DNA of 64,000 nt from Octopus bimaculoides (GCF_001194135.2 NC_068999.1:47471259-47535258); one strand, 5' to 3'; positions 2,447 through 59,459 are shown, counted from the first letter of the stretch. Numbers and translations are program-made. The notes: a model not told the origin generated them from the sequence alone.

Positions 2447-4935
2447 AAATACTCACTGTGAGTAAATATATGCACTAAGTATATGCAAATATACCAGAGT
2501 GTATATTGGTATATACGCATACTCTGTATATCTATATATTCTGGTTCAAGTAGAAGATGCAAACAGCATCATGTGTACAAGAATATTCTAGGCATGGAAT
2601 AAGAACCATCTTCGTCTGTGACTTGAATAAAGAAATCAGTTCAAAATTCCAAGAAACTTACTAAATATGTCAGTGACCAGATGAAGACCTAAAGGTAGAA
2701 TGGCTATAACAAGCCAAGATTAGTCTGAATATATCAATATGTGATAATCCTTTCTACTAGAGACAGGGACGGGTGCCTGAAATTTTCTGGGCTGGGACTA
2801 GTCAATTACACCCACCTACCCCGCTCCCAATGTTTCGCTAGTATTTGATTTATCGATCCCAAAAGGATGAAAGGCAAAATTGAACTCAGAACGTTGTGGC
2901 TGATGTTTCTGCCTTAGGGCACAATGGCTGAGACATTGTGACTATAACAACCAGGATGAATATATTGCTATATGATATTGATTTCAAATTCTGGCACAAG
3001 GCCAGCAATTTCATGGGATGGAGTAAGTCTATTACATTGATCCCTAGTATTTTACTGGTACTATTTTATCGATACTGAAAGGATGGAAGGCAAAGTTGAC
3101 CATGGCAAAATTTGAACTTGAAATGTGAAGAAATACTAATACGCTTTTTACCTGGCGTGTTAATGGTTCTACCAGTTTGCTGTCTTAATATTACTATATA
3201 ATATTGATAATTCTTGAAAAATGGCGGAGGATACAATGACTAAGACAGCCAAGATAGAAGACATGAGTCTGAAATATATCAGGGTGGACCTATCCGTCCA
3301 TTGTAAATAATGTATATTAGTGTATAATACTATATTTTCTAGGTGGTGAGTTGGCAGAAACATTAGCATATGTTCTGAGTTCAAATTCCGCCGAGGTTGA
3401 CTTTGCCCTTCATTCTTTTGCGGTCGATAAATTAAGTACCAATTGTATACTGGAGTCAATCTAATCGACTGCCCCCCCCCCTCCCCCAAAACTTCAGGCC
3501 TTGTATCTAGAGTAGAAAAGGATATATATTTCCAAAAGGCAGCAGGCTGGCAGAAACGTTAGCATGCCGGGCGAAATGCTTAGCGGTATTTCATCTGTCT
3601 TTATGTTCTGAGTTCAAATTCCGCTGAGGTCAACTTTGCCGTTCATCCTTTCAGGGTCGATAAATTAAGTACCAGTTGTGTACCGGGGTTAATCTAGTCG
3701 ACTGCCCCTCCCCCTCCCCAAAAATTTTGGGCCTTGTGCAAAGAGTAGAAAAGAATATATTTATTAATTTTGGCACAAGACCAGCAATATTGAGGGACAA
3801 GGGGAAACAATTACATTAATCCCAGTGTTCAATTGGTACTTATTTTATTGACCCTGAAAGCCAAAGTTGTCCTCAATGGAATTTGAACTTGGAATATAGA
3901 GAACCAGAAGAAATGCTGCTAAGCATTTTGCTGACATGATAATGATTTCGCCTGCTTACTGCCTTATGTGAGAGTATAATAATCCTTTGTTATATAAGCA
4001 CAAGGCTTGAAATTTGATGGGAGGAGGAGGGGGGGGGCTAGCTGATCATATCAGCCCTAGTGTTTGACTGGTACTTAATCTATCGACCTTGAAAGGGATG
4101 AAAGACAAAGGTCGACCTCGATGGAATTTGAATTCAGAATGTAACGGTCTGAAATTTTGTGGAAGGGGTTAGTTGATTACATTGCACCCCAGTGCACAAC
4201 TAGTATTTGTTTCATCGACCCTCAAAGAATGAATGACATAGTCAACCCTGGCTGAATTTGAACTCAGAACATTAAGACAGCAAAGCTCCACGATAGTGCA
4301 TGATCAAAACAAGGTTAATAAATAAGTGTTCTGTATGACAGAATGTATCTGAATGCCAAGAAGTTAAATTGATAGTGGAGGGAGTTTTTTAAAAAGATTT
4401 GGCTGTAATTTCTTACAAGATCTTTTAGAGATTTCTTTATCGGTTTATGAGAAATATATGTAAAGTAATTTGTTACCAATATTGAATATTCCAGTTAATG
4501 ATCCAAAAAGAATTTTGAATGTTTATTTTATTGATTGGAAATATTTTAATAAGTATTATTGAACAATTGGTTGTTAGCTTGCATGTTTTATACTTTGAAT
4601 TTTCAAGAACTCAAGAAAATGGTGCCTTCCTGGTTTATTATAAACATATGACAATCTTTATGTGGCCATCTCTGGTAACTTGTTATGAGCATTTTAGAAT
4701 GGTTTACAAATGTCTGACAGAAGTTTTCAGCAGCCATGAAGAATACAGCATAACTTTTAGAAGCGTTATCCTTCATTTCTTGTAAAAATAATTTTCTGAT
4801 AATGTTATTATAATGCTATCATAATAACATTATAATGTTGTTATAAGGTTATTATAAAGTCATTATAACAAAGTTATATGGGAAACAATTATTGGTTTAA
4901 TTTTGTTGTCTTCAATGTTACACTGAAGAAGTGTT

Positions 4936-5118
4936 TTAGCAGTGGTCATGGTGATGGTAATCGTGATGATGATGGTCGTGATGACCATGGTGACCATGGT
5001 GACCATGATGATCATAGTGAACATGATGTCCGTGGTGGCCTCCATGGTGATGGTCATGACCAAACACCATGTCATGTACTGCATGTTTGATGGCGCCACC
5101 AACACCCTCATGATGTTC
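4936..5118 (-). CDS. His-rich gene, terminal His/Gly/Asp-rich exon
   Basis: ttttctttttttaataatttcag|GAA CAT CAT..., 60 codons then TAA at 4938-4936; 29 His. Confidence 0.88.
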   Translation of the reverse strand, partial: EHHEGVGGAIKHAVHDMVFGHDHHHGGHHGHHVHYDHHGHHGHHGHHDHHHHDYHHHDHC

Positions 5119-6636
5119 CTGAAATTATTAAAAAAAGAAAACAATGTTAACATCAAGAAATGTAAATTTTGAATCTTTTTGTTCTAACGGATGATATTGG
5201 TTCTAAATCTATCGATTGATATCACCGCTAGACATATTGATCTCCTATTAATGGTTGCGTCTTTTACTTCTGATGCACATGAAGTTTCCTGCAACTGTGA
5301 TGGTTTTGAGAATGGAGATCATGTTATGCCACCTGACACCTTTCCACAGGGACCGAATTAACACTACTGGATACATTGAGGCACTGGAAATGGTTGTTAA
5401 GCCATAACATGTTTCAACATGACCAGCACCTTCTCACAAAACCCACAGAACCCAAAAATGGATGTCAGACAATCTTTATGATCATATAACACCAAACTCA
5501 TGGCCGCCAAACTTGCTAAATTGGACCGTTTAGCATTTAAATGTACATATGTCTTCTACTAAAGCCTTGGGCCAACCAAGGATTAGGTAGACAGAAACTG
5601 AAAGAAGCCCGTCATGTATGTATACATATATATTTATATATGTGTTTGTCCCCCCACCATCACTTGACAACCAATGTTGGTGTGCTTACGTCCCCGTAAC
5701 CTAGTGGTTCAGCAACAGAGACCGATAGAATAAGTACTAGGCTTACAAAGACTAAGTCCTGGGGTCGATTCGGTCGACTAAAAGGCGCTACTCCAGCATG
5801 GCTGCAAGCAAATGATTGAAACAAATCAAAAAATAAGAGAATATATACATATATATTTATACAAGGGGTTGCTGAAAAATTCCTGCCTTCGGGTAAAGGA
5901 AAGTGAAGGAGTATCAGTTAATTATTCAACATCATCCCCTCCTAGATTCACACGTGTATTGCAGTGGTCCTTCAGTTGTTATAAACCCTGTAAAAAAAAC
6001 TGAGAAAGTTGGGCCTCCAATCAGGCTTTCCATGATATCCTTAAAGCCAGGGGCTTTTCAGCACCCCATCATATATATATATATATATAATGGAGAAATT
6101 ATACAAAATGTACAAGTGGATTATGAGTAAAGCACCAGCACAGTTTCGATTACCTGTTATTATCCTTAGATTGCAGGAACTTCATAGTGGCAGTTGAGGT
6201 AAGAGTATAAAATTTCTTTTTTCCATCTATTTCATTAATACTAATATATATATATATATATATAGTATATATACATATGTATATAAAGTTATCTCTATCC
6301 TAATTCCTGTTACATGTTAAAACTCGCAAGAAATGTCTGAAGTAAAACTTTGTCAAATACACTTACTTCTATAACAATGGTTGGTGGTGGTCTCTGAGCT
6401 GGTGGTGGGTATGGTTGGGGTGGGTAATATGGTCCATTGTAAGGGTAGGCTCCGGATGGTGGAGGGCCTCCTAAACAAAAAAGCAAAGCAAAAATTGCAT
6501 GTTATTGATGTATCATTTAATAGTTTGGTTTTTTTGCATCGCATTTAGTGGCAGTAAATCATAGTGAAGTCAATTTTGCCCGTCATCATTTAGAATTATC
6601 AGAAAAGTACTAGAACGGATCCCCTCTCTCTCTCTT

Positions 6637-6716
<80 letters not shown>

Positions 6717-7903
6717 TTAAATAATCCTTGATGGGGTTATCTAATATGAGTTGAGAATAATTGTACTTACCTGGATTTCCATATGGATCTATAATGGAAG
6801 AAGAAAAATAAAATGAAATACATTAGGAGACAAGTATATTCAATATGAGTGAAATAACTATTTATTAATGTTGTTCCAAAAGTAAGAATACTCTATTTTT
6901 GATGTCATTAGAAACATTATAAGGAATTGAGCTGATAATGTTGGTTTCAGTGTTTGATGTTTCATTTAACTTCATATTTTGGTTGAGTCAAACTGATTAA
7001 GTGTTGTAACAAAGTCATAAACTGTATTTGACGGTACATAAGACACTTTTCTTTAAAAAGAAATGAAGTTTTGAAAAAATCATGCTGGGTCCTATATGCA
7101 ATGTTGGACCTATATTATAGACTTCAATGCACCAGAGCCTTTTTTCCCTGAATATGTGCTGTTGAAATTAGGGCACAGTTAATATGCCCATGCATCATTT
7201 CTTGACTCAAACATAACAACACTATGAATCATTACAAAAATAGCTGCTATAACAAATTATCACAGAAAATAATATTCTTTTATGTGATCTCGTTATCTTA
7301 ACATTATCTTAATTGCACCACCAAAGGTGTTTTTAACATCTCACCAATTATTATTAGAACCATTCTGCAACTATTCCACAACAATTTCTTCTACTTTTCA
7401 TCTCCCACCCCTACCCAAGTAATTCTCATCAGGAATCTAGATTTCAATCTAGTTTGGGTGATTTGTAGAATTCCTTGATAGAAAACCTTATTATTCTATG
7501 TTGAATCAGTTCTGTAAGATGTTTAGGTCAATACTCAGAATTTCCTCTATCAGGTTATCAGGGCAGATCACCTTATTGATTGATCTCTTTATCTCTTATC
7601 TTTTAACTGATTTCATAATTACATCAATAGATGAAGTAATTGAAAGATGTATGGATTTGTAAACATGTTTATCAGTCAACGTATTTATCAGTAAACAGGT
7701 TTATCTGCTGTATTTATACATTTTTGTATTCTATGAAGACAGACTTCAGACTTTGCTTTCTTCGAGTTTCAATGGTTTATCTTTTGTCTTTTGTTGGTGC
7801 AACTAAACTGATTGAATTGTGACCTTACTGAAAGCTAGACACAATTACTTTTGGTATCTGTAGAAGTACACATAAATACATACATACATAGGTACACACA
7901 TGC

Positions 7904-7934
<31 letters not shown>

Positions 7935-8230
7935 CACACACACATATCTATGTATGTATGTATTAATGCATGTGTGCCTGTGCTTGTGTGTATGTGTGTA
8001 TATATGTACACAGCTATAAATGTAGGTTTGGTGGAAAATATGCTTTACACACACAAACACAAACATACAGTCAATGCATACATAGCATATATACATTTTT
8101 CTTTACCACTCATCGTTTCGGGGTTGATAAATTAAGTACCAGTTGCGTACTGAGGTCGATTTAATCAACTAGCCCCCTCCCCCTGAAAAAATTTCGAGCC
8201 TTGTGCCTAGAGTAGAAAAGAATATATATA

Positions 8231-8261
<31 letters not shown>

Positions 8262-11000
8262 GCAGGCAAGAAGGTAGGTAGGCTGGTAAGCTGACAAACA
8301 GACAACTAGACACACAGACTGACTGACAGACGATCACTCTCTGCACCCAATTCTTCCATCCCATATCAGAATGACTATCAAATAATATGGCATTTATCTA
8401 CAACATACTTTTTATCTTCCATTCTGTCGCTGCTAAGAACTGATAGTAAATTGCTCCGACTATGTCTCTGCAAACACATTTCCAAACGATAAAGAACTCC
8501 CAGCAGTACATGTGCCCTCACAGTCTAAGATAACTATATCTCAGTGACTTTACAGACAAAGTATGTATGTATACATGCATTGTTTGTATGTGTTGTTTGT
8601 ATGTATGTATGTCATTGTTCAGTTTTATTTCAAGATTTCTTGCCAATAGAGAAAGATCTGGTTTCTAACCTAAACCCAAGGCTCCTTCATTGGAATTTCA
8701 ACATCAATAACAGGGTATTTTTGTATGTATGAATGTATGCATGTGTGCAGATTTGTATGTTTAGTTTTATGTGTGTATTCTCATGCATGTAGTTGCATAT
8801 CTAGACATACTCAGATATACTTAAATGATAAATTTTTGGGAAGTCTTACAGATTTTTAAAGTTCCAGTGATGTATGCATGAATGACTGTATGTACATCTA
8901 CATGCACCACAAGGAATTGTGTCTAATGTTTATCATACTCTTAACATCCACTTTCCCATGCTTGCATGGGTTGGATAGGAATTTGTTGGGGTGGCTTCTC
9001 AATAGCAAACTGCCCTTCACCTGTTTCCAAGTGAGGCAATGTTTCTCCATGACCAGATATGTTTTTTTTTATAGAAGATTGGGAGTGAAGGACACTGCTT
9101 ATTTGATGGTGACATTCGCTTACATTTGTACAATGTCAAGTCGAGGAGTCAATTAAACACATACACACACACCCACACACACACACGCATGTATATTAAG
9201 CTAACTAATGGCTACTTTTGTTTTTCAACACATTACATGCAAACAAATGCATTAACAAGGTACCATGTAGTGAGATTGAAAGCAGAACCTTGAGGTTCTG
9301 ATGCAAACTTCTTACCACACTCAGCTAGGACTAATTTTATCAGCCCTTAAAGGCTGAAAGGTGAAACTTCAGTCAGTCCTGCTTATACAGAAATATGGCA
9401 TGAAGATAGAGAATCAAATGTTGAAGTCTGAACCCATAGATCTAACGTACCGATGACATAAAGTTAGTTATTCAAACGGTGAGATGTGATCCACAGGTCT
9501 ACTACCCTGAAGATTCCAGACCTTTAACTAAAATCTCCTACATTTCTAATGATTTTATAACAAACATTTTAGAAAAAATATTATTTGACGCTTTCATAGA
9601 AATAACCATTTCTGTTATAGACAACAATACCTGAAATTTTAGGGGAGCATTTCATCAATTACATTGAACCCAGGGCTCGACTGGTACTTATTTCATCGAC
9701 CCTGAAAGGACGAAGGACTAAGTCATCCTTAGCGGAATTTGAACTCAGAATGTATAGTTGGAATAAATCCCGCCAAGCATTTTGTCCGACATGCTAATGA
9801 TTCTGCTAGCTTGCCTTAGTTTTCATAGAAATAATGAACAATAGCATAAAATCAGAATTTGTTTCTTAGAATAATGATGAGAAAGTTTGGTAAAAGTGAC
9901 CAATACTTCTCTATCTCCAATGTCCCCTGAGTGTATGTCTCAACATATATTCTCCATCGTCTTTCTTACTAATCTCTCTCTTATTTTACATCTGGGGTAC
10001 TCAAAGGTGCAGGAGTGGCTGTGTGGTAAGAAGCTTGTGGTGGCGAGCTGGCAAAAACGTTAGCACGCCGGGCGAAATGCTTAGCGGTATTTCGCCTGCG
10101 TTCTGAGTTCCGAGTTCAAATTCTGCCGATGTCGACTTAGCCTTTCATCCTTTCGGGGTCGATTAAATAAGTACCAGTTACGCACTGGGATCGATGTAAT
10201 CGACTTAATCCGTTTGTCTGTCCTTGTTTGTCCCCTCTNNNNNNNNNNNNNNNNNNNNNNNNNNNNNNNNNNNNNNNNNNNNNNNNNNNNNNNNNNNNNN
10301 NNNNNNNNNNNNNNNNNNNNNNNNNNNNNNNNNNNNNNNNNNNNNNNNNNNNNNNNNNNNNNNNNNNNNNNNNNNNNNNNNNNNNNNNNNNNNNNNNNNN
10401 NNNNNNNNNNNNNNNNNNNNNNNNNNNNNNNNNNNNNNNNNNNNNNNNNNNNNNNNNNNNNNNNNNNNNNNNNNNNNNNNNNNNNNNNNNNNNNNNNNNN
10501 NNNNNNNNNNNNNNNNNNNNNNNNNNNNNNNNNNNNNNNNNNNNNNNNNNNNNNNNNNNNNNNNNNNNNNNNNNNNNNNNNNNNNNNNNNNNNNNNNNNN
10601 NNNNNNNNNNNNNNNNNNNNNNNNNNNNNNNNNNNNNNNNNNNNNNNNNNNNNNNNNNNNNNNNNNNNNNNNNNNNNNNNNNNNNNNNNNNNNNNNNNNN
10701 NNNNNNNNNNNNNNNNNNNNNNNNNNNNNNNNNNNNNNNNNNNNNNNNNNNNNNNNNNNNNNNNNNNNNNNNNNNNNNNNNNNNNNNNNNNNNNNNNNNN
10801 NNNNNNNNNNNNNNNNNNNNNNNNNNNNNNNNNNNNNNNNNNNNNNNNNNNNACTAGGCTTCCAAAGAATAAGTCCCGGGGTCGATTTGCTTGACTAAAG
10901 GCGGTGCCCCAGCATGGCTGCAGTCAAATGACTGAAACAAGTAAAAGAGATAAAAGAGGTTTTTTTTAAAAATGAATTTTTACTTACTATAAGGATTCAT
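4936..11000 (-). CDS. Small Pro/Tyr-rich + histidine-rich protein, 105 aa, 4 coding exons, family not recognised
   Basis: Exons 11000-10988 (13 nt), 6788-6771 (18 nt), 6470-6367 (104 nt), 5118-4936 (183 nt). All introns are GT-AG, all three donors are GTAAGT and the phases match (1,1,0). Translation: MNPYNPYGNPGGPPPSGAYPYNGPYYPPQPYPPPAQRPPPTIVIE-EHHEGVGGAIKHAVHDMVFGHDHHHGGHHGHHVHYDHHGHHGHHGHHDHHHHDYHHHDHC*. Mixed CAT/CAC and GGT/GGC/GGA codons argue for coding sequence rather than a microsatellite. Confidence 0.8.
5290..5530 (+). mobile_element. Decayed Tc1/mariner-superfamily transposase fragment (catalytic region)
   Basis: Frameshifted translation gives HVMPPDTFPQG...GYIEALEMVVKP...QKWMSDNLYDHITPNSWPPN, matching the FPQG and W-P-P-N-S-P-D-L-N-P region of these transposases. 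Confidence 0.7.
6367..6470 (-). CDS. His-rich gene, Pro/Tyr-rich exon
   Basis: ttttgtttag|GAGGCCCT...ATAGAA|gtaagt, encoding GGPPPSGAYPYNGPYYPPQPYPPPAQRPPPTIVIE. Confidence 0.85.
6771..6788 (-). CDS. His-rich gene, 18-nt microexon ((N)PYGNP)
   Basis: Long pyrimidine tract, then tttttcttcttccattatag|ATCCATATGGAAATCCAG|gtaagt; phase 1 to 1. Confidence 0.75.
10239..10852. other. Assembly gap (others at 12426-12435, 14718-14959, 29430-29930, 30463-30561, 34021-34988, 36314-36643, 51361-51832)
   Basis: Runs of N. Confidence 1.
10988..11000 (-). CDS. His-rich gene, ATG-containing exon (whole exon 11006-10988; MNPY + phase 1)
   Basis: Minus strand reads aaatcag|AAAATC ATG AAT CCT TAT A|gtaagt. 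The NPY content matches the next microexon. Confidence 0.62.
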
Positions 11001-11525
11001 GATTTTCTGATTTAACACCAAATACTCTTGCCGCTTGCCAAACTGATTTAATCACTTGTTTGAAAATGGTTCTTATATATGCACGGACACACGCACATAC
11101 ACACTCACATTTGTGTATGATTATGTGTGTATCTATGTAAGTATACGCATGTATATATATATGTGCAGGTGTGAGTGAATGAGTGTGTGTATGTGTGTGT
11201 AGAACAGTGTGGGCAGGGACTTGAAGGTTTTTTCTATAAATAAATAATAAAGTCATGTGATTTGTTTTAAGAAGACTTTGGAGTTATGACCTCATTGTGT
11301 TCTCTTAATGAATCATTATAATAGATTAATAACCTACCAAAGTGAAAGTTTTTAGATCTAAAATCTTATCAACAACACTTGAATATATTTGTTCTCCTAT
11401 TTTGAAGCTGTGACCTTCTCACAATAATATTTCATCAGAAAGAAAAAGAAAGAAAAAGCAGTCTTATTTATTAGTTGTCATCATTACTTATGTAAATTCA
11501 TTAAGTTGTAATATAAATATAACAT

Positions 11526-11707: not shown

Positions 11708-14700
11708 CTTTCCGTATTCCCGAGCGTCATACTAATATATACTTTTGTTATTTACACCACCTGTCCTCGTCTGTTGTTATTATTTGTATATTCTCCCATA
11801 TATGAATACACATATATATATGTATGGATATATATATATTGTGTGTGTGTGTGTATATATATATATAAATATATATATATATGTATATATACACATACGA
11901 ACCTCCACCAACTATTCTGTGTATACAACCACCATATATACATATTTATGTAAATATATATAGATGTTGGTTTGTTTATGTCTCTGTAAGTTAGCGGGGT
12001 TTTTTTTTAACTCTAGCAGTGCCAAGAGATTTGAAGTAAGGGGTGAGGAGGAATCTACATCAAGACTGTTATAGGGACTTGGTCAGGTGATTAGATATGG
12101 GAAGTTTTTTTTGTGTCAATGAGGAGCTAGAATATTTATTTCTTTATTGCTAAACCTAGAGGGGACAAACAAGGATAGATAAAGGGATTAAGTCGGTTAC
12201 ATTGACACCAGTGCATAACTGGTACTTATTTAATCGACCCCAAAAGGATGAAAGGCAAAGTCGACCTCGGTAGAATTTGAACTCAGAACATAAAGATAGA
12301 TGAAATACCGTTAAGCATTTCGCCTGGCGTGCTAACGTTTCTTATTTCTTTATTGTCCACAAGGGGCTAAACATAGAGGGGACAAACAAAGGGATTAAGT
12401 CGATTACATTGATACCAGTGCGTAANNNNNNNNNNTAGAGGGGACAAACAAAGGGATTAAGTCGATTACATTGATACCAGTGCGTAACTGGTACTTAATT
12501 TATCGACCCCGAAAGGATGAAAGGCAAAGTCGACCTCGACAGAATTTGAACTCAGAACGTCACAGCAGACGAAATACCGCCAAGCATTTCGCTTGGCATG
12601 CTAACGTTTCTGCCAGTTTGCCGCCTTGAACAGCAGAAATATTGATGGCGTTTTGACTTTTGTATTTATGTAAATGAAAATAATTGAAATTAGATTACAG
12701 AAGATTCATTGTAAATGGGAAGTAATTATTTCTACACACACACACACACATTCTCTCTCTTTTTATTTTGTTTCACACACACACTTGCCCTTTCACACAC
12801 ACACACTTGCCCTTTCACACACACACTCTTTCTCTCTCACACACACACACTCTGTCTCTCTCTCACACACACTCTTTCTCATACACACATACATGCACAC
12901 ACACACACTCACGCATGCACACACACTCACACTTTCTCTCTCTCTCACACACACACACACTCTATCTTTCTCTCTCTCTCTCTCTCACACACATACACAC
13001 CATTAGATTTATGCTGTAATTAATTGTCTGGAGTGAATAATTAAAAACATATTGATGACTTTGCAGAAACAGTTAAAACATTTCAGCTCTTAGTTATTTT
13101 TTTCTAATTAAAACTTCCGAATAACATAGGCTGTATGGTGTTGCTGATTTGCCCAGTACACATTGAAGAGGTTGTAGAGAGACTGTGACAAAAAACTTGT
13201 TTGAGAAAAGAAGAAAAGTGAGTTTTTAGGATTTATTGATCTTTCTATCTTTTTTATTTGGTTCATTTACCATAATGACTCTTCCAAAATAAGACTATGT
13301 TAGTTTCTGATCAAAATACTTGAAAAACGAATTCAAAAATGGAAAGACCACAAATTTTAGCCAAGCTAGCGGGAAACTGGGAAACGGTTTGTTTAAAAGA
13401 AGAAAAGGAAAAAAGAAAAAGGTGACTTTATAAAACAACAAGAACATCAATAACAAGAAGATCAATAACGACAACAACAACAAAAATTTGCCTGAAGGAA
13501 AGGGAGATGAAATTATTGTGACTGACAATACACTGTCATAAATTTAAAACACAGATAGGAAAACTGAAAGTAGTAGGAGCCTACAGAGATGTACAACTAG
13601 ACTCAGTGGAAACATCTGTTTTGACACTAGCACTAGCATATATGCCTTATACAAGATCAATAATATTGAATGTCAACTTGAATTTGAGAAAAACCCCACA
13701 CAAATTAGATTGGAATTAAAGAATGATAGCAACAACAACAAAATTAACAATTAAATCTCCCCTGGGAATTGGGATAGTGGTAGCAATTGTAGCTTGATTA
13801 CAAATACTGATAATGGCAGTAATAATGAACCACAACATTCCGTTTACAACAGTTTTTGGCAAATTGTATGATACGACACACACATATATCCCCATGGAAA
13901 TGAAACAGATGCAACGTCTGTACTGGCTGAAGTGTGAAACTTAATCCTTTGAATGCAGAAATGTGATACATATACACTCAAAATTTTATTATTGCTAACT
14001 GTGGAAAGCGGTTTTATTCAGTTTTAGAAAAAAACAAAAAAATAAATAAATAAATAAATAAAGAAAGAAAGAAACCCAACTCTTCTTATGCTGTGAAAAA
14101 TAGAGACACCCACAATGACACATTTTACAAAAGACAAGTAGAGGGTGCTTTTCATGCATCACCGGCATGGGAACCAGTCAGGCGGCACTGGCATCGACTC
14201 ACACTCGAATGGTGCCACACTCGAGTGGGATGGTGTAGAAGATGTTGAAATAGGCATGTGGACAACATCAAAGTAAAACAATGGGAAAGCATTGGATTGT
14301 GGTTTAAATAATTAATTTAATTGACACTTGCATTTATTTTTTATATACACCAAAGTTTCACTACATGACATTACCAACTTGGTGAAGAAGAAAATAAACA
14401 GGGGAAATACTGTGTTGATGTGATGAGAAGGTAGAACCGGGCATGTTTTGTGTCTGTGTGTGCGTTGGTCATTCAGTGGTGTCTGTTTATGTTCTGTGAC
14501 TGCTACTGTGTTGGGTCGTTCATGCTGAATATGTGGTTCTATGTTGGCTGCTTGACTGGTGCAAGTTACTGGCTGGCTGTCTCCTGGTGATGGCTATCTG
14601 CTGTTCCTTGACGGATTGCTGTATTTATAATGGTCATAACAGCTAGAAGGACAGACATACTATAGGAGTAATTTCTTCCTATGTAGGTCGCCTCCTGTCC

Positions 14701-16713: not shown

Positions 16714-17631
16714 CAAAGTATCGTATTAATTATGAAAAAGAATTAGACACTGAAAAAGAAACAAAAAAAAAAAAAATCCCCGTTGTGATATTTTTAACAA
16801 TAAATTATTTTACTTCTGTAAAAGAATAGAGCAACAGAAGCCAACAATCCCTCATATGTTAACTCGCTATCGATTACATAGATAATTGATTCTAAGAACG
16901 ACGGAACTGACACAAAAATGTCATGTTTGTTGACGACAACGAACTGGTTGCTAACACCGAAGCTACAATCGCCCCCATGCATTCTTTAAAATGTTACAAC
17001 TCTCCATTGCATGCCATACCATCCATGGCATTTACCAACTTTCACATTAAACAACTATTACTTTGTTTCAAGAGGGGAAGTTAAAAAATACATAATAAAA
17101 GATAACGAAAACAAAAAGCCATGTTTCTACATCCTTGTATGATAAGTTTCATTTTTGATATCTTTGATCCAGAAATTATTTTTAAAAAACATTCCAAAAT
17201 CCGGTTAGCCCTGCCTATAGCATGATAAAAAGATATCTAACACCTGTTCTACATCTTAAATTATACAAAAGGCTATTATATTCTATATACAACACATAAC
17301 TTTTAGGTCATTGAAACTTATCGCATCCTGTTCAGTGTTTATACTTTACTGTTTTGAATGTTATTGTTAATCATAAAGTTGTATCATTTAAAATTCGTAA
17401 CAGGGTTAATTTAAGTATCAAGAAATAGATTAAGTATCAAGAAATAGATTAAGTATCAAGAAATCAAAACATTTTTATATCGATGATAACACGATCTTCT
17501 CTTTTTTTCATTTTCGCAAATTCATGTTCAAAGGAAGGTGATAAGACGTGGTATTAACTTTTACTGGAGACTTATTGGCGTGACACCGCTAAGCATTTCG
17601 CTGGAACTTGTTTGGTATCTCTCTCTAGGCA

Positions 17632-18490
17632 ATGTCTCTCTGTATTTATTCTATTGTATATATTATCATCCCATTTTTATATTGTTTCCCAATTATATTA
17701 GCTGATCTGACATTTCCGAACCTTTTACTGGTTTCTTTCGACGGTTTTCGATGGGATTACATGACTCATTCAAATGCTACTTTGAATAACTTTAAGTGGT
17801 TTATCGAAAATGGCGTTTCTGCACGACGTGGTCTACAAAATGCCTTTATTACGAAGACTTTCCCTAATCACATCACTTTAGTGACCGGTATGTACGAAGA
17901 AAGTCACGGTATAGTTGGTAATATAATGTATGATCCTCTTTACAACGATACCTTTTACGGTTCTATTGATCAAATCAGAGACCCTAAGTGGATGGACGAC
18001 GGAGGTGAACCCATATGGGTGACTAACCAAAAGCAAAACACAAAGGCTAGAAGTGGATGTGTTTACTGGGTCGGTGATGGTGCTAGCATAAAAGGGTTTA
18101 AACCATACAGATATTTAGAATTTAATAAAAATCATTTGTTGAATTTTACTAGCAGAATAGACAAAATTATTGAGTGGTTCACAGACCCCTCTTATCCTAT
18201 TAATCTGGGGTTGTTATATTTCGAAGAACCAGATCATACCGGGCATCTCTTTGGTCCTGATTCACCAGAAATTGATAAACAATTAACTGTCCTTAACAAT
18301 GATTTAGGTTATCTTATTCGACGTTTAAACAACACAGGTTTACTTCCCAAAACTAATGTCATCATAACCAGTGACCATGGAATGGCATTTACGCCAGCAG
18401 ATAAAATTATTAACTTGGATTTATACATCACGCCGTCTAAATATCAAATTTTTCAAAGAAATCCTATTGGAAATATCCTACCTAATAAAG
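17632..18490 (+). CDS. ENPP4/5: ENPP coding exon 1 (signal peptide + catalytic core)
   Basis: Acceptor ctctctag at 17628 just before the ATG; donor AAAG|gtgag at 18491. Confidence 0.95.
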
Positions 18491-21400
18491 GTGAGAACTC
18501 ATTTTATGTTTATGGTTTATAAATATATAACTATATATGGTTTATTAATTAAATTATATCTTTGTTTATTTGAACCGTTTTCATGTAAAGAGCGTACACA
18601 AATCAGATTTTGCGTTGTTGTTTTAACAAAATCAGCTTTCGCGATGTTATTCAGCAGTCCTGAGATTAAATACATTCTCGACATGACCATTCTGTCTTAT
18701 TTTCGGGAATATGATACCTAAAACCACATCATCCGGTAGGAGGTGATTTAAGAGAGATTTAGCTGCTATTTCTTGCAAGTCGAATGACCTCTTCATTCAA
18801 GTGTAAACCAGTCCTGAACAATTATACTGATATCGATATTTTCACGCACTCGCAACGCGTGGATATTTTTACCTTTTCTTTTTCTTTTTCTGCTTGAATG
18901 TTTAATATATCATCGTCATCACCATCATCGTTTTCACGTCCACTTTTTCATGCCCGCATGGGTCAGAAAGAATTTGCTGAGGTGGATGGACTTCTACAGC
19001 TGGATGCTCTTCCCGAAGGTAATATTTTCCCTCGACCAGACATGTTTTCCATGAAAGATTGGAAATGAAGGTCATCGCCTGCATTGTGGTGAATCTCGTT
19101 TACAACTATCACGTGAAGTATAGTACATACGCAGTTACATATGTAAGTGCGTATGTACATAGATACATGCATACACACGACGGGCTTCTGTCAGTGTTTT
19201 CCTACCAAATCCACTTACAAGGCTTTAGTCGGTCTGGGGCTGTAGTAAAGGACACTTGCCCTAGGTGTCACACTGTAGGATTGAACCCAAAACCTTGTGA
19301 TTGGCAAGCACAGGGTTATATATATGTGTGTGTGTGAGTTTCTTTGTCCTCTCTGGGCGAGAGGAAATATTACCTTACTTGGAAATAGGTAAAGATTGAC
19401 AACGGGAAGGTCCTTTGAAAAAATGCCTGAACGAATTCCATCTCATCCATGCAAGAATGGAAATGTGTATTTTAAAACAATAATGATGAAATGATCTTGA
19501 TATAAATGTATTTCGCACTTCTTCAGTTTCTCTTCACCAATTTCTTTCAGAAAATATATTTATAGCTTTTAGTACAAGTGCACCAAGGCTGGGAGCATCC
19601 ATGCTGTGGGAACAAACCCCTAAGTATGGTTTTATATATAGATATGTATAGGTGTATAGCTATACCTGTTCACCCATGTAAAAAGCACTGGTGCTGATGC
19701 CATGTAAAAAACACCCAGTACAATCTGAAAAGTGGTTGGCAGAATCCAAGGTGTAGAATCCAAGCCAAAACAGACTGGAATCTGGTGCAGATCCTGGCCT
19801 TGACAGCTCCTGTCAAAACCATCCAACCCATGCCAGCTTGGAAAATGGACTTTAAATGATGATGATGAATGGCTAGGCTATATGTGGAATTTAATGTAAT
19901 ACTTACTTATTCACATTGTTTTGAATTAATCATTCATTACCTCTTAGCATTGAGATTTCGATGATGTGGTTGTTTATTTTGAAAATGACATTGTAGAGTA
20001 AGTGTGAGAGGCTGGATCTGGTCAGTTTGGACAAAAAACAAGTTAGAATATTTGAGCTGGGTATTTGGCCAGTTTTAATGCTAAAGGGATAAGCTGTATG
20101 TGGAATGTGGAACGTCTGTTCAGATTAATATGTTGATAAATTAAAAAAATCCTGTCTAAATTCATGATTATTTTAGAATTTAATTGAAATACATAAGGGG
20201 TGTATTTTAGTTAGAAATATAATAACTGAAGGGTTAACTAGAACAGTAAACCAAAGCCATAGTCACTGCTGCCTTAGTAGATTAGTTTAAAGATTACTGT
20301 AAGCTGGAACCAAAATTAACCTAAACAGATTGTTGAACTTAGAAACTTAACATTTTTGATATTTTCGTTACTTTCTTTTTTTACTCTTACTGGTTTCAGC
20401 TCAGGGCTGAGGTCATGCTGGTACACCACATATAGTCACTCGGTGCTGTTTCTAATACTGATTTTGGTGAAGTAGCGAGTTGGATGGAGCTGTTCTTCTT
20501 TGCATCTCCTGTTGTGATGTGGGTTCATCTGGTATCTCAGACAGAAACCTGTCCAGGCGTTCCTTGAAAACTTCCACATCAACATCATGTGGATCTGGAA
20601 GGATACTCTTTCACTTGTTTCAGTCGTTTGACTGCAGCCATGCTGGAGCACCGCCTTTATAGGCGAGCAAATCGACCCCAGAGCTTAATCTTTGTAAGCC
20701 TAGTACTTATTCTATCGGTCTCTTTTGCCGAACCACTAAGTTACGGGGACATAAACACACCACCATCGGTTGTCAAGCGATGCTGGGGGGACAAACAGAC
20801 ACACAAACATACACACACACACACACACACATACATATATATACATATACGACAGGTTTCTTTCTGTTTCCGTCTACCAAATCCACTCACAAGGCTTTGG
20901 TCGGCTCGAGGCTATAGTAGAAGACACTTGCCCAAGGTGCCATGCAATGGGACTGAACCCGGGACCATGTGGTTGATAAGCAAGCTATTTACCACACAGC
21001 CACTCCTGCACCTATATTGAACAATTGCGGTCCCTTGAAACCCAGACTAACTGCAGTACTGTGTCCTTATTTTAGATGGGAAGATTTTTTTGTTTTTGTA
21101 TATGATAATTAAGAAAGAGTAATTTTTAAAATTAACATGTGAATTTGCGGAACAATTTTTTGATAATGAAATCCTCTTTTTTTAATCTTTTAGATGTTCC
21201 TATTGAGCAGTTTGTAAAAAATCTATCATCAGTGTCTCACTTACATGTGTTTCTTAAGGAAGATATTCCAGAAAGTGCTCATTACAAACACAATCGCCGT
21301 ATTCAGCCTTTACTGTTGGTTCCCGATGAAGGATACACTCTCAATTCATCACATTATAGCTACCACAGTGAGTACATTCCTCAAAACTACTTTGATTTGT

Positions 21401-24400
21401 AATCTTTGTATCGTATTTTACAATAGGCACAGGCATGGCTGTGTGGATAAGATGTTTGCTCCTAACCATGTGGCTTTGGGTTCAATCCCTCTGTGTGGCA
21501 CTTGTAAAGATGGCCAAGATACTGCTAAGCATTTTGTCTGGCATGGCAACAATTCTGCCAGCTTGCTGCCTTAAATTTTAATTAATATTAATTTTAATTA
21601 TAATTCTCAGCTATTTCATTTTAATAAACTCTTGGTTTTAATTCTCACTTATTTCATTTTAATTTCTTTTTTCTTTAAATAAAAATTTCAGGACAAGGAG
21701 AACATGGCTACAACAACTCTTTACTTGATATGCATCCAATTTTTATGGCTTCTGGGCCAAGCCTTAAGAAAAACTTCTCAGTTGACATGTTTGAAAATGT
21801 TGATTTATACCCTTTGATGTGTACACTTCTTGGTTTAAAACCTTCTCCTAATAATGGTAGTATGAAGACTGTTCAAGCATTTCTTATCCCTAAATATTCA
21901 AGCAGCTTTACAACATTTATTACATGTAAGTACAATTGTGTCTATTAATTTCCTTTATTTCTTTGCCATTCTAATCAAAGACTAATTTCAGAATCCTTAC
22001 ATCTTACTTTTCTGTAAAAAAATAGTCTCCAGCGTATATTACTCAGCCTGTTTCTGTCTTGAAATAGCACAACAGGGTGTATTTTTGAGGATGCTAATAT
22101 GTGTGTGTGCATGGGGTGAGGAGTGTTTTTGTGTTTGTTTTTATGTCAAGTTATAATAAAAACAATTTTATACTAAACCAGAAGATCACTCAGTACTTAT
22201 TTTGTAGAGCATATGTTTATTAAACTTTTACAAGACAGTGACTTCGAAGTTTCAGCCTGCTTACCTTTGTTGGACTGTCCAACAAAACATTAAAGTCACT
22301 GTTACCCTTCCTCATGTAAAAGTAGTGTACATATATATATAGAGAGCTAAGGTCAGTTTGGATGGGAAGCTGAGGTATCTCCAGAGAAGCACTAAATCCG
22401 AATACTGGGCTGTCAACACTGTCAGGATCCAAGCCAAAGCTGGAATACTTTTGGTGTAGAAAATCCAAGTTTCACGATGATTATACCATCGTATGGTTTG
22501 ACAAAGAGTAAATAATCCAGTGAAAAGAAGAAGACAAAGAAAATTCTTTAACACCTCTTTAATTATAAGTTACAAATGTTTCCGCACCATCTCCATTTGC
22601 AATGCCAGTTTACAAGAAAATTCTAAAAGAAAAAGTCACATAAACAATCTCCATATTTGGGAGATAGCAATCTGTGGAACTGGTCTTGTGTATGAGAAAC
22701 AGCTCTGATGGAATGGTCATATGAAAATGGAAAATATCAGCTGAATAAAAATGTGTGTTTTGGCCAGAGGAAGACCAAGAGAGCCAAAAGAAGTGGTGGA
22801 ATCAGATCTTTTGATGCTGGGCCTAGAAAACAAGATATCATATACTAGCATTAAAAAATAAATAAATAAAACAACTCAGATGATAAAATCATGATGAAGT
22901 ACTTATGTTGGGTACATTAGGATGAGGATAGAGTATCTATACTGAGTACATTGTGTGATATGTTGAATCTGGCCAATTTGAACATAAAACAAGAAGAATA
23001 TTTGGGCCAGATATGGTCAGTTTAAATGCTAAAGGGTTAAGTAAATAAAAATGGAATACCCTTGTCGAGTACATTAAAATGATGGTGGATTACTCATGTT
23101 GAGTACATTAAAATAATGATGGAGTACTGATGACAGAGTGTCAGTCTTTGTAAAGTAAATGTCTGTTAAACAGAGCCCTTAATTCTCAAACTGATCTCGC
23201 TATTTATTTCTCTTCTACTAATAGACATGAATAGAAAACAGAAATTGCCTCAGCGATGTAACCTTAGAACTTAAATTTAAATCTTGAAGTGTTTGCTTGT
23301 ATCTTTGTAAGTCATTCCATGTAATTTATTTCAACTGTTTTGTTATATATCTTCCGTGAGATGGTAATTACTTTCTTGTACTTCCATTCCAATATTTTCA
23401 TTTTAAAATTACTTTAAGAGCCAACATTTCCTCCAACTTCAAGCCTAGAAAGAATTCTTTGATATACTTTGTTTATGTATATATATATATATATATATAA
23501 ATGGAGAGTTTGAACACAGAAAAATATCAATTTTTTGTATAATAGTCAATTTCATATCACCTTTGTATGTTTCAATTTCTTACCTACATTCATATTTTGC
23601 AGTTAAGATTGCATTATGCATTTAAAAGGTAAAAACATCTTCAGGGCAAAAATTGACAAATATTCATTCACATCCATTAGGATGTGAATGATAAAAATTA
23701 AAATAAACATTGGAAGTAACCTTAAAATGAAATGTACTCTCACCATTTGAAAATAGTCTAACTCCATACACATAATACATAGTGAATCATACCCCCATTA
23801 ATTATGAAATATAAAAATTAATTTAACTAAAATATACATATGATAACCTAAACTATCAACAAATAAGACTAATACATCTAAATAAATAAAAATTTTTAAT
23901 AAACATTGGAATTCTCACAACTAAATAAGTAGACATTATTTACATTTGACAGATATTTGTCCTCATCTTGTTTGTTGTTAAAACAGTCTTGGGGAAATTT
24001 CGAACCTTAGGAATGAGAACCCAGGTTAGAAACCTCCCCAAGATACCTGATGAAGGCTGGAGGGTATATAAGCAGAAATGTTGTGTTAACAACAAATAAG
24101 GTGAGGACAAATATCCGTCAAATGTAAATAATGTACATAATTCCTCATCTCTTAAATATAGAACTGTATTAAATAAATAGAAGTTAAATGAATATATTGA
24201 TTTGATTTCTTGCTAATGTTAGCATGGAAAGTGGACGTTAAACAATGATGATATATATTTTATTTTTTATTCTTTTCACAAATGAGTAGAGATAGGAATG
24301 GTAGCCAACCATTATAAAACCAATCTAAGGAGAATAGTAGTATGACCTGTAACTTTAAGCTATTTTTTGAAAGGAATCCAAATGACACACATGCTGACTA

Positions 24401-25071: not shown

Positions 25072-25104
<33 letters not shown>

Positions 25105-25355
25105 TATGTATGTATTGTTTTGATTGTGATATTTAAAAAAACTCCGTTTCTGTTTCTCTCTTTGCAGACATCCTAATTCTGTCTCTTACTGCAACATTGG
25201 TTGGCATCTACACTGTAGCTTCATGTCGGCAACAGAGAATGAAACACAAACACATGTCATTTTACACATCTGGCATAAAATTCTTGGTTGCATCGTCTGT
25301 TCATCCAACTCAAACATCTTTACTCTCTGATTCAGATGATGATGTCATTCCATAG
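17632..25355 (+). CDS. ENPP4/5: Ectonucleotide pyrophosphatase/phosphodiesterase, ENPP4/ENPP5-like type I membrane protein, 484 aa
   Basis: Exons 17632-18490, 21194-21367, 21692-21925, 25168-25355, all introns phase 1 and GT-AG. Signal-peptide-like N-terminus; motifs SFDGFRWDY, catalytic [28 protein letters not shown] and [10 protein letters not shown]; C-terminal TM segment ([19 protein letters not shown]) and short tail. ENPP4 versus ENPP5 orthology cannot be settled by eye. Confidence 0.95.
21194..21367 (+). CDS. ENPP4/5: ENPP coding exon 2
   Basis: ttttag|ATGTTCC...CACA|gtgagt; contains [27 protein letters not shown]. Confidence 0.92.
21692..21925 (+). CDS. ENPP4/5: ENPP coding exon 3
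   Basis: tttcag|GACAAGGAGAACATGGC...ACAT|gtaagt; GEHGYNN...[11 protein letters not shown]...PNNGS. Confidence 0.93.
22705..22850 (+). mobile_element. RTE LINE ORF2 C-terminal remnant
   Basis: Degenerate GRGRPR...[12 protein letters not shown] motif. Confidence 0.45.
23502..24634. mobile_element. Long-TIR non-autonomous DNA element with a nested palindromic element (23933-24134)
   Basis: Arms 23502-23684 and 24450-24634 are close reverse complements; lies in ENPP intron 3. Confidence 0.65.
24041..24087 (+). ncRNA. Degenerate hammerhead-like motif in a palindromic Penelope-derived element
   Basis: agatac-CTGATGA-aggctg...aagca-GAAA-tGTT-gtgtt; canonical CUGAUGA core, weakened stems. Confidence 0.45.
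25168..25355 (+). CDS. ENPP4/5: ENPP terminal exon (TM helix + cytoplasmic tail)
   Basis: ctctttgcag|ACATCC..., TAG at 25353-25355. Confidence 0.88.
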
Positions 25356-25811
25356 AATACATTTGCTTTGGGTTTTTTCACACGATGCTCTCCGTCTCTG
25401 TTATCGCAAAGGAAAGTGGTGTTTGTTGTTTTTGTTTTGATTTTCCAAGCATTTATCTATACGAGACATATGTTGTGGTATATACGTACATTGTTATTTC
25501 TGTCCTCGCCAGTTTTGTTTTGGATTCCAGTTGGAGAGGTTCAGTTAAGGGACGGATTTCATTACAGGAATTATTGAAGAAAAGAAATTTGTTGATCATG
25601 GATTTTTATATTCCTCTCTCTCTCTCTCTCTCTCCCTATCTGTCTATCTGTTTGTCTATCTACCTTCATACCTACCTAACTAACCCCTCACACACATACA
25701 TGTGCTGATCTCTGATCACACACACACATACATGTGTATACGTGTGTGTGTGTGATCAGTACTTGTATCTGAAAGAGAAGCGCATATATATATATATATT
25801 TTCTTTTTAAG

Positions 25812-26144
25812 AAGTTAAAAGTTGTGGCCAGTCATAAAGCAACCGTTGGTTCCACATCTATAAAATGCTTAGCAGTATAGGAGACTTGTCAGACTCAAAT
25901 GGTTGAAGGCGCATAACCTCTCTACAACTGGAGGAAGAAATATGCAACGGCCAGTTGCTTTTTTAAAATTTTATCTTTTTTTTCTTTGCTTACAAAACCA
26001 ACTGACTGTTACATATTTCTTCCTCCAGTTGTAGAGAGATTATGTGCTTTCAGCCATTTGAGTCTGATGAGTCACCTGTACTGCTAAGTGCTTTATAGGT
26101 ATGAAACCAATGGTCATTCTATGACCAGCCATAACTTTTAGCTT
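25812..26144. repeat. Palindromic foldback element (~147-bp arms, ~35-nt loop)
   Basis: 25812-25958 aligns without gaps to the reverse complement of 25993-26144. Confidence 0.85.
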
Positions 26145-26185
26145 CCTAAAAAATATATATGTGTGAGTGTGTGTGTGTGTGTGTA

Positions 26186-26407
26186 CATAAGGTCTGCAAA
26201 TCTAATGGAGGCCTCCAAAGACATTCTAAAATCCACATTGATCAGAACTTAACTGCAGCTCTTGGTGGTCCAAAGCAGATATGCAATTTATGTGGATGTC
26301 TTTTCAAAACATTGTCTGGTTTAAAAAGCCATATCAGATGCCATGATGGCTCTAAGGTGTAGGTACAGGAGGTGGTCAGAATCTACATAAAGAGTAGACA
26401 ATCACCA
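26186..26407 (+). mobile_element. 5'-truncated LINE (RTE-like) 3' end encoding C2H2 zinc fingers
   Basis: HKVCKSNGGLQRHSKIH, then a complete C-x2-C-x12-H-x3-H finger (CNLCGCLFKTLSGLKSHIRCH), TAG at 26362 and a short tail. No splice sites or start context. Confidence 0.55.
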
Positions 26408-27914
26408 TATATTTGTATGTATGTATGTACATAAGTATGTAGTGGCATGTAGCTTAGTGGTTATAATGTTCATAAGATAGTGGTTTCGATTCCTGGACCA
26501 GCCGACGTGTTGTGTTCTTGAGGAAAACACTTCATTTCACGTTGCTCCAGTCCACTCAGCTGGAAAATATGAGTAATCTCACAACGGACTGGTGTCCCGT
26601 CCAGGTGGGGGGGATATATAAGCCATGGAAAATGGGAAACCAGCCGTCTGAGTCTACACGACTCGGGAAGGAACTTTACTTTACTTATGTATGTATGTAT
26701 ATATGTGTGTGTACATACATGCATGTGTTCGTTAGTATATGTTTATGATTTTATTTATTTTCAATAGTATGTTGAGTGTATCCATGAACAAAAATTATTG
26801 TAGGTCCTTATTGATTGTTCTTTATTTATTTATTGGAAGAGGGTGTATATATGAAGTACGCATCTTGCTTTGCTTAAATCCTAGATTTACTTTACTTGAT
26901 AAGACTATCTTTATCCAGCAGCCACGAAAAACCATCTACATGGTTGCCCCCATCTCCTAGAAATATCAACTACATTACTCTGAATCACAAACTACCATTT
27001 AGAAAAAGAAAGAATACATTAGACATTAATTTTAATCCTACTTTATTTAAGTTTTATCTGTTGCAGCTGATCTATGTTAATCATAGAGGAAGGGAGCTGG
27101 CTACATATTCTCTTAGGAGCAGTCAACTAACTGTCAGACCATTAGAGGACTACCTCTTCTTTTTTTTTTTTCCCCACACATCAATAGTATAGAAATAACA
27201 TGTTTACATTATTATTTAACCCACAGTAAGGCTTTGTAATATCTAAATTTATTTTAGTCTTAGACATATTAAAAAAGGTGGAATGGTCACAGCTGGGAGA
27301 CTGATAACAGGCTTGCTCAGTGAGGGCTGACCTCAAGGCTAAACAATAACAACTGCAGAGTCAGTAGAGAGTTTGTAACATTTCCCACTTTTCCATTTAT
27401 CAGTCACTTTTTATCCATTCTGTGATAAATATTCAATATTGGAGGATTTTTCGTAACTCTCTTCAGCATTCAAATTCCTCTGTCAAATGTAACACTTGTT
27501 TCTTCACATTGTTTTGAATTAATCATGAAATTATCTTGTAGCTTTGAGATTTTGATAATGTGATTGTTTATTTTTAGAATGACATTGTAGGGTAGGTGTG
27601 AGAGGCTGGATCAGACCAGTTTAAACATAAAATGGAAAATATTTGGGTTGGATATGCTGAAGAGTTAAGCTGCTTTTTGAAGCAGAATTGACATGACATT
27701 TCAATGGAAGTGGTGTCATACAGCCAGGAGTGGTCTCAGGCATTTTGATACCACAGGGTTATACTGTAGAGAACAGTCAGACTTCTGTAGGTCCATATAT
27801 GTCAACAAATAAACAATAGATTTGATCTGGAATGTAATCTAGGAAGATATAAACTTCATATTTCCTCTTGTCCAAGAATAGTCAATCAGGAAAATTAAGA
27901 ATCAAGTGAAAAAC

Positions 27915-28300
27915 ATTAATGAATTTATGTCATTAAAGGTACATAATTTATTTGTTAAAAATATATTATTTATACCATTTAAGGTATATAAATTATATCA
28001 TGAAGGGTATATAATTTATATCATTAAAAGACATAATTTATATCCTTAGAGGTATATAAATCATATCATAAATGTTATATAAATTACATTGTTAAAGGTA
28101 TATAATTTATATCATTGACACTATATAAATTATATCTTTAAAGGTATATAATTTATATTGTTAAAGATATATAATTCGTATCATCAAAGGTATATAATTT
28201 TATATCATTAAAGTTATATAGTTTATATCATTTAAATTATATAAATTATACCATTAAAGACGTATAATTTATATCATTAAAGGTATATAATCTACGCTGT
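27915..28300. repeat. Degenerate ~29-bp AT-rich minisatellite
   Basis: Repeated tatatcattaaaggtatataat. Confidence 0.8.
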
Positions 28301-29044: not shown

Positions 29045-29183
29045 ACCACATGGTTCTGGGTTCAGTCCCACTGTGTGGCACCTTGGGCAAGTGTCTTCTA
29101 CTATAGCCTCGGGCCGACCAAAGCCTTGTGAGTGGATTTGGTAGACGGAAACTGAAAGAAGCCTGTCGTATATATTTTTATAC

Positions 29184-29217
<34 letters not shown>

Positions 29218-29428
29218 ATATGTTTGTGTGTCTGTGTTTGTCCCCCTAACATCGCTTGACAACCGATGGTGGTGTGTTTACGTCCCCGTAACTTAGCGGT
29301 TCGGCAAAAGAGACCGATAGAATAAGTACTAGGCATCCAAAGAATAAGTCCTGGTGTTGATTTGCTCGACTAAAGGCGGTGCTCCAGCATGGCCACAGTC
29401 AAATGACTGAAACAAGTAAAAGAGTATA
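29045..29428 (+). mobile_element. tRNA-derived SINE family A (other copies near 1680-1925, 5560-5835, 20620-21010, 35240-35625, 40655-41005, 52870-53100, 55040-55170, 58790-58935, 61545-61770)
   Basis: Recurrent ...ggttcagtcccactgtgtggcaccttgggcaag...(AT/GT)n...cagcatggccacagtcaaatgactgaaacaagtaaaagag. Confidence 0.85.

Positions 29429-30115: not shown

Positions 30116-59459
<29,344 letters not shown>

Follow-up and report, generated by a model that had tools for sequence, protein, structure and literature searches.

Does the locus at NC_068999.1:47471259-47535258 of Octopus bimaculoides (assembly GCF_001194135.2) encode a genuine histidine (His)-rich protein, or do splice-like sites and repetitive sequence there merely imitate one? 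The stretch analysed, called the window below, comprises 64,000 nucleotides (nt) of one strand, numbered from its first letter, and a preliminary description of it had proposed that four exons, connected in phase through three GTAAGT donors, specify a protein of 105 amino acids. Coordinates and translation of this proposal were found to be exact: the minus-strand segments 11000-10988, 6788-6771, 6470-6367 and 5118-4936 join to a 318-nt coding sequence, giving 105 residues and a terminal TAA. From comparison with the orthologous locus of Octopus vulgaris, we consider it very probable that the gene is real and that its His-rich tail is translated; as judged by the substitution pattern, purifying selection is shown to act on this reading frame, the tail included. 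According to the alignments, the gene has been kept in Octopus and probably in octopods at large. Its status as more than a chance arrangement derives from the cross-species evidence, not from the coincidence of splice sites by itself.

The elements of the gene are listed in transcriptional order.

11072-11079, minus strand: TATA box TATATAAG, read from the sequence, first T 79 nt 5' of the ATG, identical in O. vulgaris
10988-11000, minus strand: coding part of exon 1, ATGAATCCTTATA (MNPY plus 1 nt), with a GTAAGT donor
6789-10987, minus strand: intron 1, including the assembly gap 10239-10852 and repeats resembling short interspersed nuclear elements (SINEs)
6771-6788, minus strand: exon 2, an 18-nt microexon (finishes N, then PYGNP, plus 1 nt), with acceptor tract and AG before it and the donor CAG/GTAAGT after it
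6367-6470, minus strand: exon 3, 104 nt, Pro/Tyr-rich region GPPPSGAYPYNGPYYPPQPYPPPAQRPPPTIVIE
4936-5118, minus strand: coding part of exon 4, 60 codons and TAA, comprising a short linker with a predicted helix and then the His-rich tail
5064-5103, minus strand: predicted short helix, approximately VGGAIKHAVHDMV, residues 51-63 (AlphaFold2 of the exon-4 sequence, low confidence)
5074-5079, minus strand: weak internal donor GTACAT after codon A58, identical in both Octopus species
4939-5061, minus strand: His-rich tail GHDHHHGGHHGHHVHYDHHGHHGHHGHHDHHHHDYHHHDHC, residues 65-105
4982-5037, minus strand: imperfect 9-nt tandem repeat GGTCACCAT, read as GHH, ~6 copies within the tail (Tandem Repeats Finder: period 9, 6.2 copies, 76% matches)
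4896-4901, minus strand: ATTAAA, candidate polyadenylation signal 34 nt 3' of the stop, at equal distance in O. vulgaris

The three donors read ATA/GTAAGT, CAG/GTAAGT and GAA/GTAAGT (slash, exon end), all acceptors consist of a pyrimidine tract and then AG, and the GTAAGT motif occurs in the window only ~0.3 times per kb per strand. The upstream in-frame stop nearest the ATG is a TGA, 54 nt away. From its sequence and position, the TATA box would serve as promoter element, with transcription probably starting near 11045, and the ATTAAA may function in polyadenylation. The linker of the protein has the sequence PPPTIVIEEHHEGVGGAIKHAVHDM. The earlier designation as a microexon gene holds for exon 2, whose 18 nt make a true microexon, and does not hold for exon 1, whose 13 nt are merely its coding part. 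It had also been claimed that the track of open reading frames (ORFs) displays only wrong-frame translations of the last exon. This is mistaken, for the correct frame is listed as a 44-amino-acid ORF from an internal Met (4936-5070), and it is the longer ORFs that are in the wrong frame. Intron 2 carries a long (GA)n/(CT)n microsatellite at 6625-6705.

No reading frame crosses the assembly gap 10239-10852, as intron 1 encloses it completely and the exon-1 donor is 130 nt upstream of it. On the gap-free O. vulgaris chromosome (L001), exon order and orientation are as in the window. The left flank of the gap (to 10853) aligns up to L001 position 10583 and the right flank resumes at L001 position 11134 (window 10037); because the flanks are thus colinear with the gap-free chromosome, the scaffold join between exons 1 and 2 is sound. 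The ~550 nt of L001 opposite the gap are microsatellite-rich, contain stops in all three forward frames and have no annotated exon. The window as a whole contains eight assembly gaps (3,237 N), and very long trinucleotide repeats (33820-35320) flank the gap 34021-34988.

Selection on the reading frame and the annotated O. vulgaris product

Colinearity between the O. vulgaris chromosome and the window extends beyond 30 kb, with a non-coding identity of 75-94%. The exons correspond to L001 positions 10001-10013, 17045-17062, 18850-18953 and 21663-21863, with splice sites identical to those of the window, and the full ORF of the His tail is intact in O. vulgaris DNA, leading to a product of 111 amino acids. 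The stop codon together with the next 27 nt (identical), the ATTAAA and the TATA box are also kept. Exon 1 differs by one synonymous change in its 13 nt and exon 2 likewise by one synonymous change, while the four differences in exon 3 comprise two synonymous ones plus N22S and I44V. The coding sequences, aligned over 315 nt, differ by 21 substitutions, and third codon positions account for 15 of these. Nei-Gojobori analysis of the whole coding sequence yields proportions of nonsynonymous and synonymous differences (pN and pS) of 0.026 and 0.227, respectively, hence a ratio of nonsynonymous to synonymous rates (dN/dS) of 0.11; for exon 4 alone, dN/dS is 0.086. When exon 4 was read in the five control frames, dN/dS was at least 1.9 in four, and the remaining one, an antisense frame, holds 22 stops. 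Had the coding sequence diverged as much as the introns (7.4% mismatches), 18.6 nonsynonymous changes should have accumulated; the count is 6.5 (Poisson P ~0.001). The six amino-acid changes between the two Octopus proteins (N22S, I44V, V63I, F64Y, G84D, D93H) are, by their sequence, conservative or inside the His/Asp/Gly repertoire of the tail. Loss of the frame in a related octopus had been named beforehand as what would speak against the gene; O. vulgaris retains the exons, the splice sites, the stop and, according to the dN/dS, the frame.

These results bear directly on the proposal that the locus is without function, that is, a CAY-rich repeat and a Pro-rich sequence joined by chance splice-like sites, or else a young ORF that serves no purpose. 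This genome does abound in CAY/CAN simple repeats, which translate to His-rich frames in other parts of the window, the tail too is imperfectly repeated in tandem with a 9-nt unit, no relatives were detected, and the two species are so close that the conservation of splice sites alone is not significant. Against this stand the excess of third-position substitutions and the deficit of nonsynonymous changes relative to introns, with only this one frame coding-like; the conservation of TATA box, start codon, stop and poly(A) signal; and the finding that at the syntenic site of the distant octopod Argonauta, where a gene is annotated, exon 1 forms a conserved island. We therefore regard the absence of function as highly improbable. 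The CAY/CAN-rich repeats with His-rich frames are situated at ~63415-63650, 52227-52423, 53087-53158, 39188-39259 and 37186-37436; since His-rich frames arise so readily from simple repeats here, composition alone is no evidence for a gene.

The sole database relative of the O. bimaculoides gene is CAI9737015.1 (UniRef A0AA36FFX5; P0001 in our comparisons), a 'hypothetical predicted protein' of 118 amino acids from the orthologous O. vulgaris locus. Exons 1-3 and the exon-4 acceptor are the same in this model as in the window gene, and so are residues 1-58, bar two substitutions. The model differs in that it exits exon 4 after AIKHA, at the weak GTACAT donor, and ends in an exon encoding 60 amino acids. 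This terminal exon (L001 25500-25679), for which a Pfam search returned no match, is located within a ~5-kb stretch (~25087-30039) to which nothing in the window corresponds and which also contains an ORF (L001 26776-26991) that we take to be the remnant of a reverse transcriptase from a long interspersed nuclear element. Placed in a segment found in O. vulgaris only, the annotated C-terminus of CAI9737015.1 is lineage-specific and possibly an artefact.

One could hold, accordingly, that the main product of the gene is of this O. vulgaris type, formed through the GTACAT donor, and that the His stretch is mostly intron or 3' untranslated region. That the model is the sole one for Octopus in databases, that it came from a pipeline using Iso-Seq and RNA-seq (PMC10700109), and that the internal GTACAT is conserved in the window are arguments for the idea. 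We nevertheless judge it quite unlikely, for GTACAT is a weak donor, the terminal exon used in the model lacks a window counterpart, and the sequence past GTACAT shows third-position-biased substitution and keeps both its ORF and its stop. The odd 3' end might furthermore have an origin in the annotation procedure, which merged Iso-Seq, RNA-seq and protein alignments with ab initio predictions made on repeat-masked sequence (PMC10700109): the His tail is picked up as tandemly repeated sequence, and masking may thus have forced the model out of it. Annotation pipelines have probably missed or truncated the gene owing to its microexons and to masking of the repeat-like last exon. The gene had been called hidden. 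With models in place for both O. vulgaris and Argonauta, which also furnish indirect evidence of spliced transcripts, this does not apply to the locus as such. It does apply to the His-rich C-terminus, which is in no protein database, given that the O. vulgaris model ends in an exon of that species' own. Provided that it is expressed as predicted, the gene, conserved in octopods and defined by a His-rich end that protein databases lack, would be an example of low-complexity genes that escape cephalopod annotation on account of microexons and repeat masking.

The phosphodiesterase neighbour, Argonauta and repeats of the window

The neighbouring gene, 6.6 kb upstream of the His-rich gene and divergent from it, codes for an ectonucleotide pyrophosphatase/phosphodiesterase of ENPP4/5 type. 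Its first exon (17632-18522, plus strand), open over 296 amino acids, represents the N-terminal part of the enzyme (PF01663, E = 2e-67), with best matches to an 'enpp4-like' protein of O. sinensis (94% identity) and to Argonauta hians (81%). In A. hians (L002; GCA_054771915.1, BAAFZT010000043.1), the ENPP gene likewise has a divergent partner, 7.6 kb upstream, with an annotated product of 108 amino acids; the coding sequence of this partner starts at ~17,627,402 on the plus strand and runs beyond 17,629,811. It begins with ATGAATCCTAATT followed by GTAAGT, that is, with a 13-nt first coding exon and a donor as in the window, and is preceded by a TATATAAAG box at a distance similar to that of the Octopus TATA box. 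The pattern of this first exon and its donor occurs once in the 35-kb Argonauta locus, on the expected strand. A candidate for exon 2 was not found in 2.4 kb of the Argonauta intron. His-rich tblastn matches elsewhere in the Argonauta locus were rejected as counterparts of the tail, being simple repeats. On a contig with a more distant relative of the window's ENPP gene (L003; 71% identity to the ENPP exon of the window), the upstream 10 kb contain neither an MNP/GTAAGT first exon nor a similar ORF product. Downstream of the O. sinensis ENPP4-like gene (L004), at 35093-35586, there is an opposite-strand gene for a protein of 1926 amino acids with repeated adenylate-kinase (ADK) domains.

Several observations weigh against a gene whose His tail is translated. 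The full-length comparison involves two close species that differ by ~7-12% in their introns. For exon 4 alone, 4.5 nonsynonymous changes are observed against 11.1 expected, at a modest P of ~0.01-0.04. The pS of exon 4 (0.35) is well above the intron divergence, which suggests hypermutable third positions (CAY/CpG) and hence an inflated dN/dS contrast. The 18-nt length difference to O. vulgaris, which begins at the 3' edge of the repeat array (window 4980/4979), is a multiple of the 9-nt unit, so that the frame would be kept without any selection. The only annotated Octopus product bypasses the His tail, and the 105-, 111-, 44- and 50-amino-acid products are absent, by exact look-up, from a collection of 15 billion proteins that includes assembled sequencing runs. 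The Argonauta comparison extends over exon 1 and the 2.4 kb of intron. For O. sinensis, finally, the 10 kb upstream of ENPP contain no protein-coding gene in RefSeq, the flank falling short of exon 1. Neither the conservation of splice sites nor the in-frame indel of 18 nt carries enough weight by itself, and we do not rely on either.

The SINE-like repeats, 100-200 nt in length and present in many copies (12442-12624, 10039-10238, 9655-9815, 5641-5841, 4163-4280, 3808-3966 and others), are common to the O. vulgaris locus at 70-90% identity, and one of them abuts the gap in intron 1. On the minus strand at 58372-58728 is a Glu/Leu-rich ORF of 118 amino acids (containing LELEEEIDHDELTKLQLEQELEAVDENNEEVKSIVEKLMLEYAELN), without Pfam match and possibly an exon of another gene. 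Rfam, at the gathering threshold, identified no family anywhere in the window.

Properties of the protein and its possible function

The predicted protein has a mass of 11.9 kDa, a computed isoelectric point (pI) of ~6.5 and a grand average of hydropathy of -1.4. Its 105 residues include 29 His, 17 Pro, 15 Gly and 9 Tyr, and the one Cys is the final residue. All 29 His are among the 60 residues encoded by exon 4 (48%), as are all 12 HxH, 14 HH and 5 GHH motifs; composition and motif counts agree with the 29 His, the GHH repeats and the terminal Cys reported at the outset. The tail of 41 residues is 59% His, is built of GHH/DHH units, has no tryptic sites and ends in the Cys. Residues 1-41 are rich in Pro, Tyr, Gly and Asn, and neither PPxY nor NPxY motifs are found in them. 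On the Kyte-Doolittle scale, the best 19-residue window reaches 0.2 and the N-terminal 20 residues average -1.2; a hydrophobic segment being absent, there is neither signal peptide nor transmembrane helix by this measure, as had been expected for the signal peptide. AlphaFold2, run on the exon-4 sequence as a single sequence, places a helix at residues 6-18 of that sequence and predicts the remainder as coil, at a mean confidence (pLDDT) of 61. The computed net charge is -5 at pH 7.4, +12 at pH 6 and +21 at pH 5.

The preferred explanation of these properties is a single-copy octopod gene with four coding exons, whose product is a cytosolic, mostly disordered protein with a function related to metal or pH; taken as a whole, we lean slightly towards it. 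In such a protein, the low-complexity N-terminal region (Pro/Tyr/Gly/Asn-rich) might mediate self-association or docking, and the short amphipathic helix would lie between this low-complexity front and the His tail. The tail itself would present a multivalent array of imidazole ligands, able to take up several Zn, Cu, Ni or Co ions per chain at neutral pH, and protonation of the histidines upon acidification would release the metal. The protein could thereby buffer or store metal by means of its His, or work as a switch gated by pH. A function of this sort, which the preliminary description had proposed as intracellular metal buffering or pH-responsive phase separation and which is deduced from composition, is made plausible by the charge switch between pH 7.4 and 6 in combination with the density of HxH and HH motifs. 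Whether metal binding constitutes the physiological role is, from composition, an evenly balanced matter. Counting against the metal assignment is that metals are bound in vitro by poly-His sequences of every kind, which leaves composition with little to say on physiological role.

The same charge switch could be read differently, with the gene real and the tail acting as proton buffer or pH sensor whose charge reversal near pH 6.5-7 drives reversible self-association or condensation. The protein, with Tyr/Pro-rich stickers, would then be an intracellular analogue of the pH-triggered coacervating proteins that are rich in His. A pI of ~6.5 and the swing from negative to positive charge speak for the idea, and it draws further on the presence of 9 Tyr and 17 Pro in the N-terminal region of 45 residues and on the predicted disorder of the tail. 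The Asp residues and the terminal Cys placed among the His (DHH, HDH, DHC) suit metal coordination at least equally, though, and proton sensing and metal binding are not mutually exclusive. We consider the pH sensor, taken by itself, unlikely, but it is the main rival of the metal reading. Quite apart from its biological interpretation, the compact natural sequence is of interest to those who study assembly triggered by pH or metals, since its charge changes abruptly close to physiological pH.

Comparison with known systems

Sequence searches did not place the protein in a family, in keeping with the preliminary description, which had recognised none. The single Pfam match, RAM (PF15320), is compositional (E = 0.043; 14.8 bits against a cutoff of 25), and NCBIfam and the PDB sequences returned nothing at E <= 10. 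Searching the exon-4 product with phmmer against 1.84 billion representatives gave no match at E <= 0.001, and in 5.8 billion clusters, searched with the single protein and with a two-species profile at E <= 10, CAI9737015.1 alone was matched. A literature search gave no mention of the accession, and the GHH-repeat string matched only C. elegans C50F7.5. Membership in the CYSTM family of tail-anchored, Cys-rich stress proteins, a lead suggested by a Pro/Tyr-rich N-terminus and a TTVYVVED-like linker, was rejected: PF12734, their C-terminal transmembrane module rich in Cys, was not matched at E <= 10 and there is no hydrophobic segment. BLASTP against human CYSTM1 aligned 12 residues outside the linker at E = 0.4.

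The histidine-rich beak proteins and suckerins of squid resemble the octopus protein in being cephalopod-restricted, of low complexity and rich in His, Gly and Tyr, and pH-dependent phase behaviour has been proposed for them. They differ in being secreted, encoded in tandem gene clusters and expressed in buccal mass or tentacle, whereas the octopus gene occurs once in the window and once in L001, and its product lacks a signal peptide as well as any sequence similarity to them. The separation from these secreted proteins that was made at the outset is upheld on both of these grounds. A secreted structural or antimicrobial His-rich protein, comparable to beak proteins, suckerins or histatins, would fit the His/Gly/Tyr/Pro-rich composition known from cephalopod biomaterial proteins. 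We give this possibility hardly any credence in view of the missing signal peptide and hydrophobic N-terminus and the lack of similarity, to which is added that beak proteins and suckerins, reported only from decapodiforms, were not found in O. bimaculoides (PMC9068888).

Cephalopods accumulate much Cu, Zn and Cd, and their oxygen transport is copper-dependent. To our knowledge, the only small metal-handling proteins characterised in cephalopods so far are Cys-based metallothioneins. If the inferred metal role of the His-rich protein is correct, the two would be alike as small metal-handling proteins of octopus. Octopus metallothioneins (ObiMT1, OvuMT1) consist to ~30% of Cys, arranged in CxC motifs in alpha/beta1 domains (PMC9781358). 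An identity as metallothionein was rejected, with 1 Cys in 105 residues as opposed to ~30% Cys in CxC/CC motifs; a protein with 29 His and this solitary Cys would coordinate any metal through imidazole groups. If true, the proposed function would add an imidazole-based small protein to cephalopod metal handling.

C. elegans C50F7.5 shares with the octopus protein a Pro-rich repetitive body, a C-terminal HHHDHGHHGHHGHH tract and the GHH unit (PMC5604969). It differs in its length of 306 amino acids and in a hydrophobic N-terminus, MQISLTILLAVAGATFA, which we read as a signal peptide, and the resemblance is one of low-complexity regions only. We regard it as an analogy that most likely reflects convergence upon an architecture that recurs.

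Ni, Zn and Cu are bound by sequences of comparable His density, among them cytosolic ones of bacteria (H. pylori Hpn; the C-terminal His-rich tails of SlyD, HypB and UreE) and the GHHPH repeats of histidine-rich glycoprotein. The octopus protein and the bacterial Hpn and SlyD/HypB/UreE tails are alike in small size, absence of a signal peptide, a binding region that is about half His, and the interspersed Gly/Asp with an occasional Cys; from what is generally known of such proteins, multivalent and pH-reversible metal binding is to be expected. Proteins of the functional class typified by Hpn carry HxH/HH motifs at high density in a segment that is soluble and flexible, and the octopus tail, predicted as coil, corresponds to this. 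Homology between the two is not detectable, and the octopus gene stands apart as an animal gene with introns and a Pro/Tyr-rich N-terminal domain. A more specific proposal, which we advance as speculative and consider unlikely, is that of an octopod-restricted cytosolic metal buffer or chaperone, based on His and not on Cys, that arose by in-frame expansion of the 9-nt GHH unit, has been retained since before the Octopus-Argonauta split and handles Cu or Zn in a pH-gated manner, possibly via condensates nucleated by the Tyr/Pro-rich domain. If true, such a His-based buffer could serve the copper supply of haemocyanin synthesis or metal storage in the digestive gland and would parallel bacterial Hpn in an animal, homologs being absent elsewhere.

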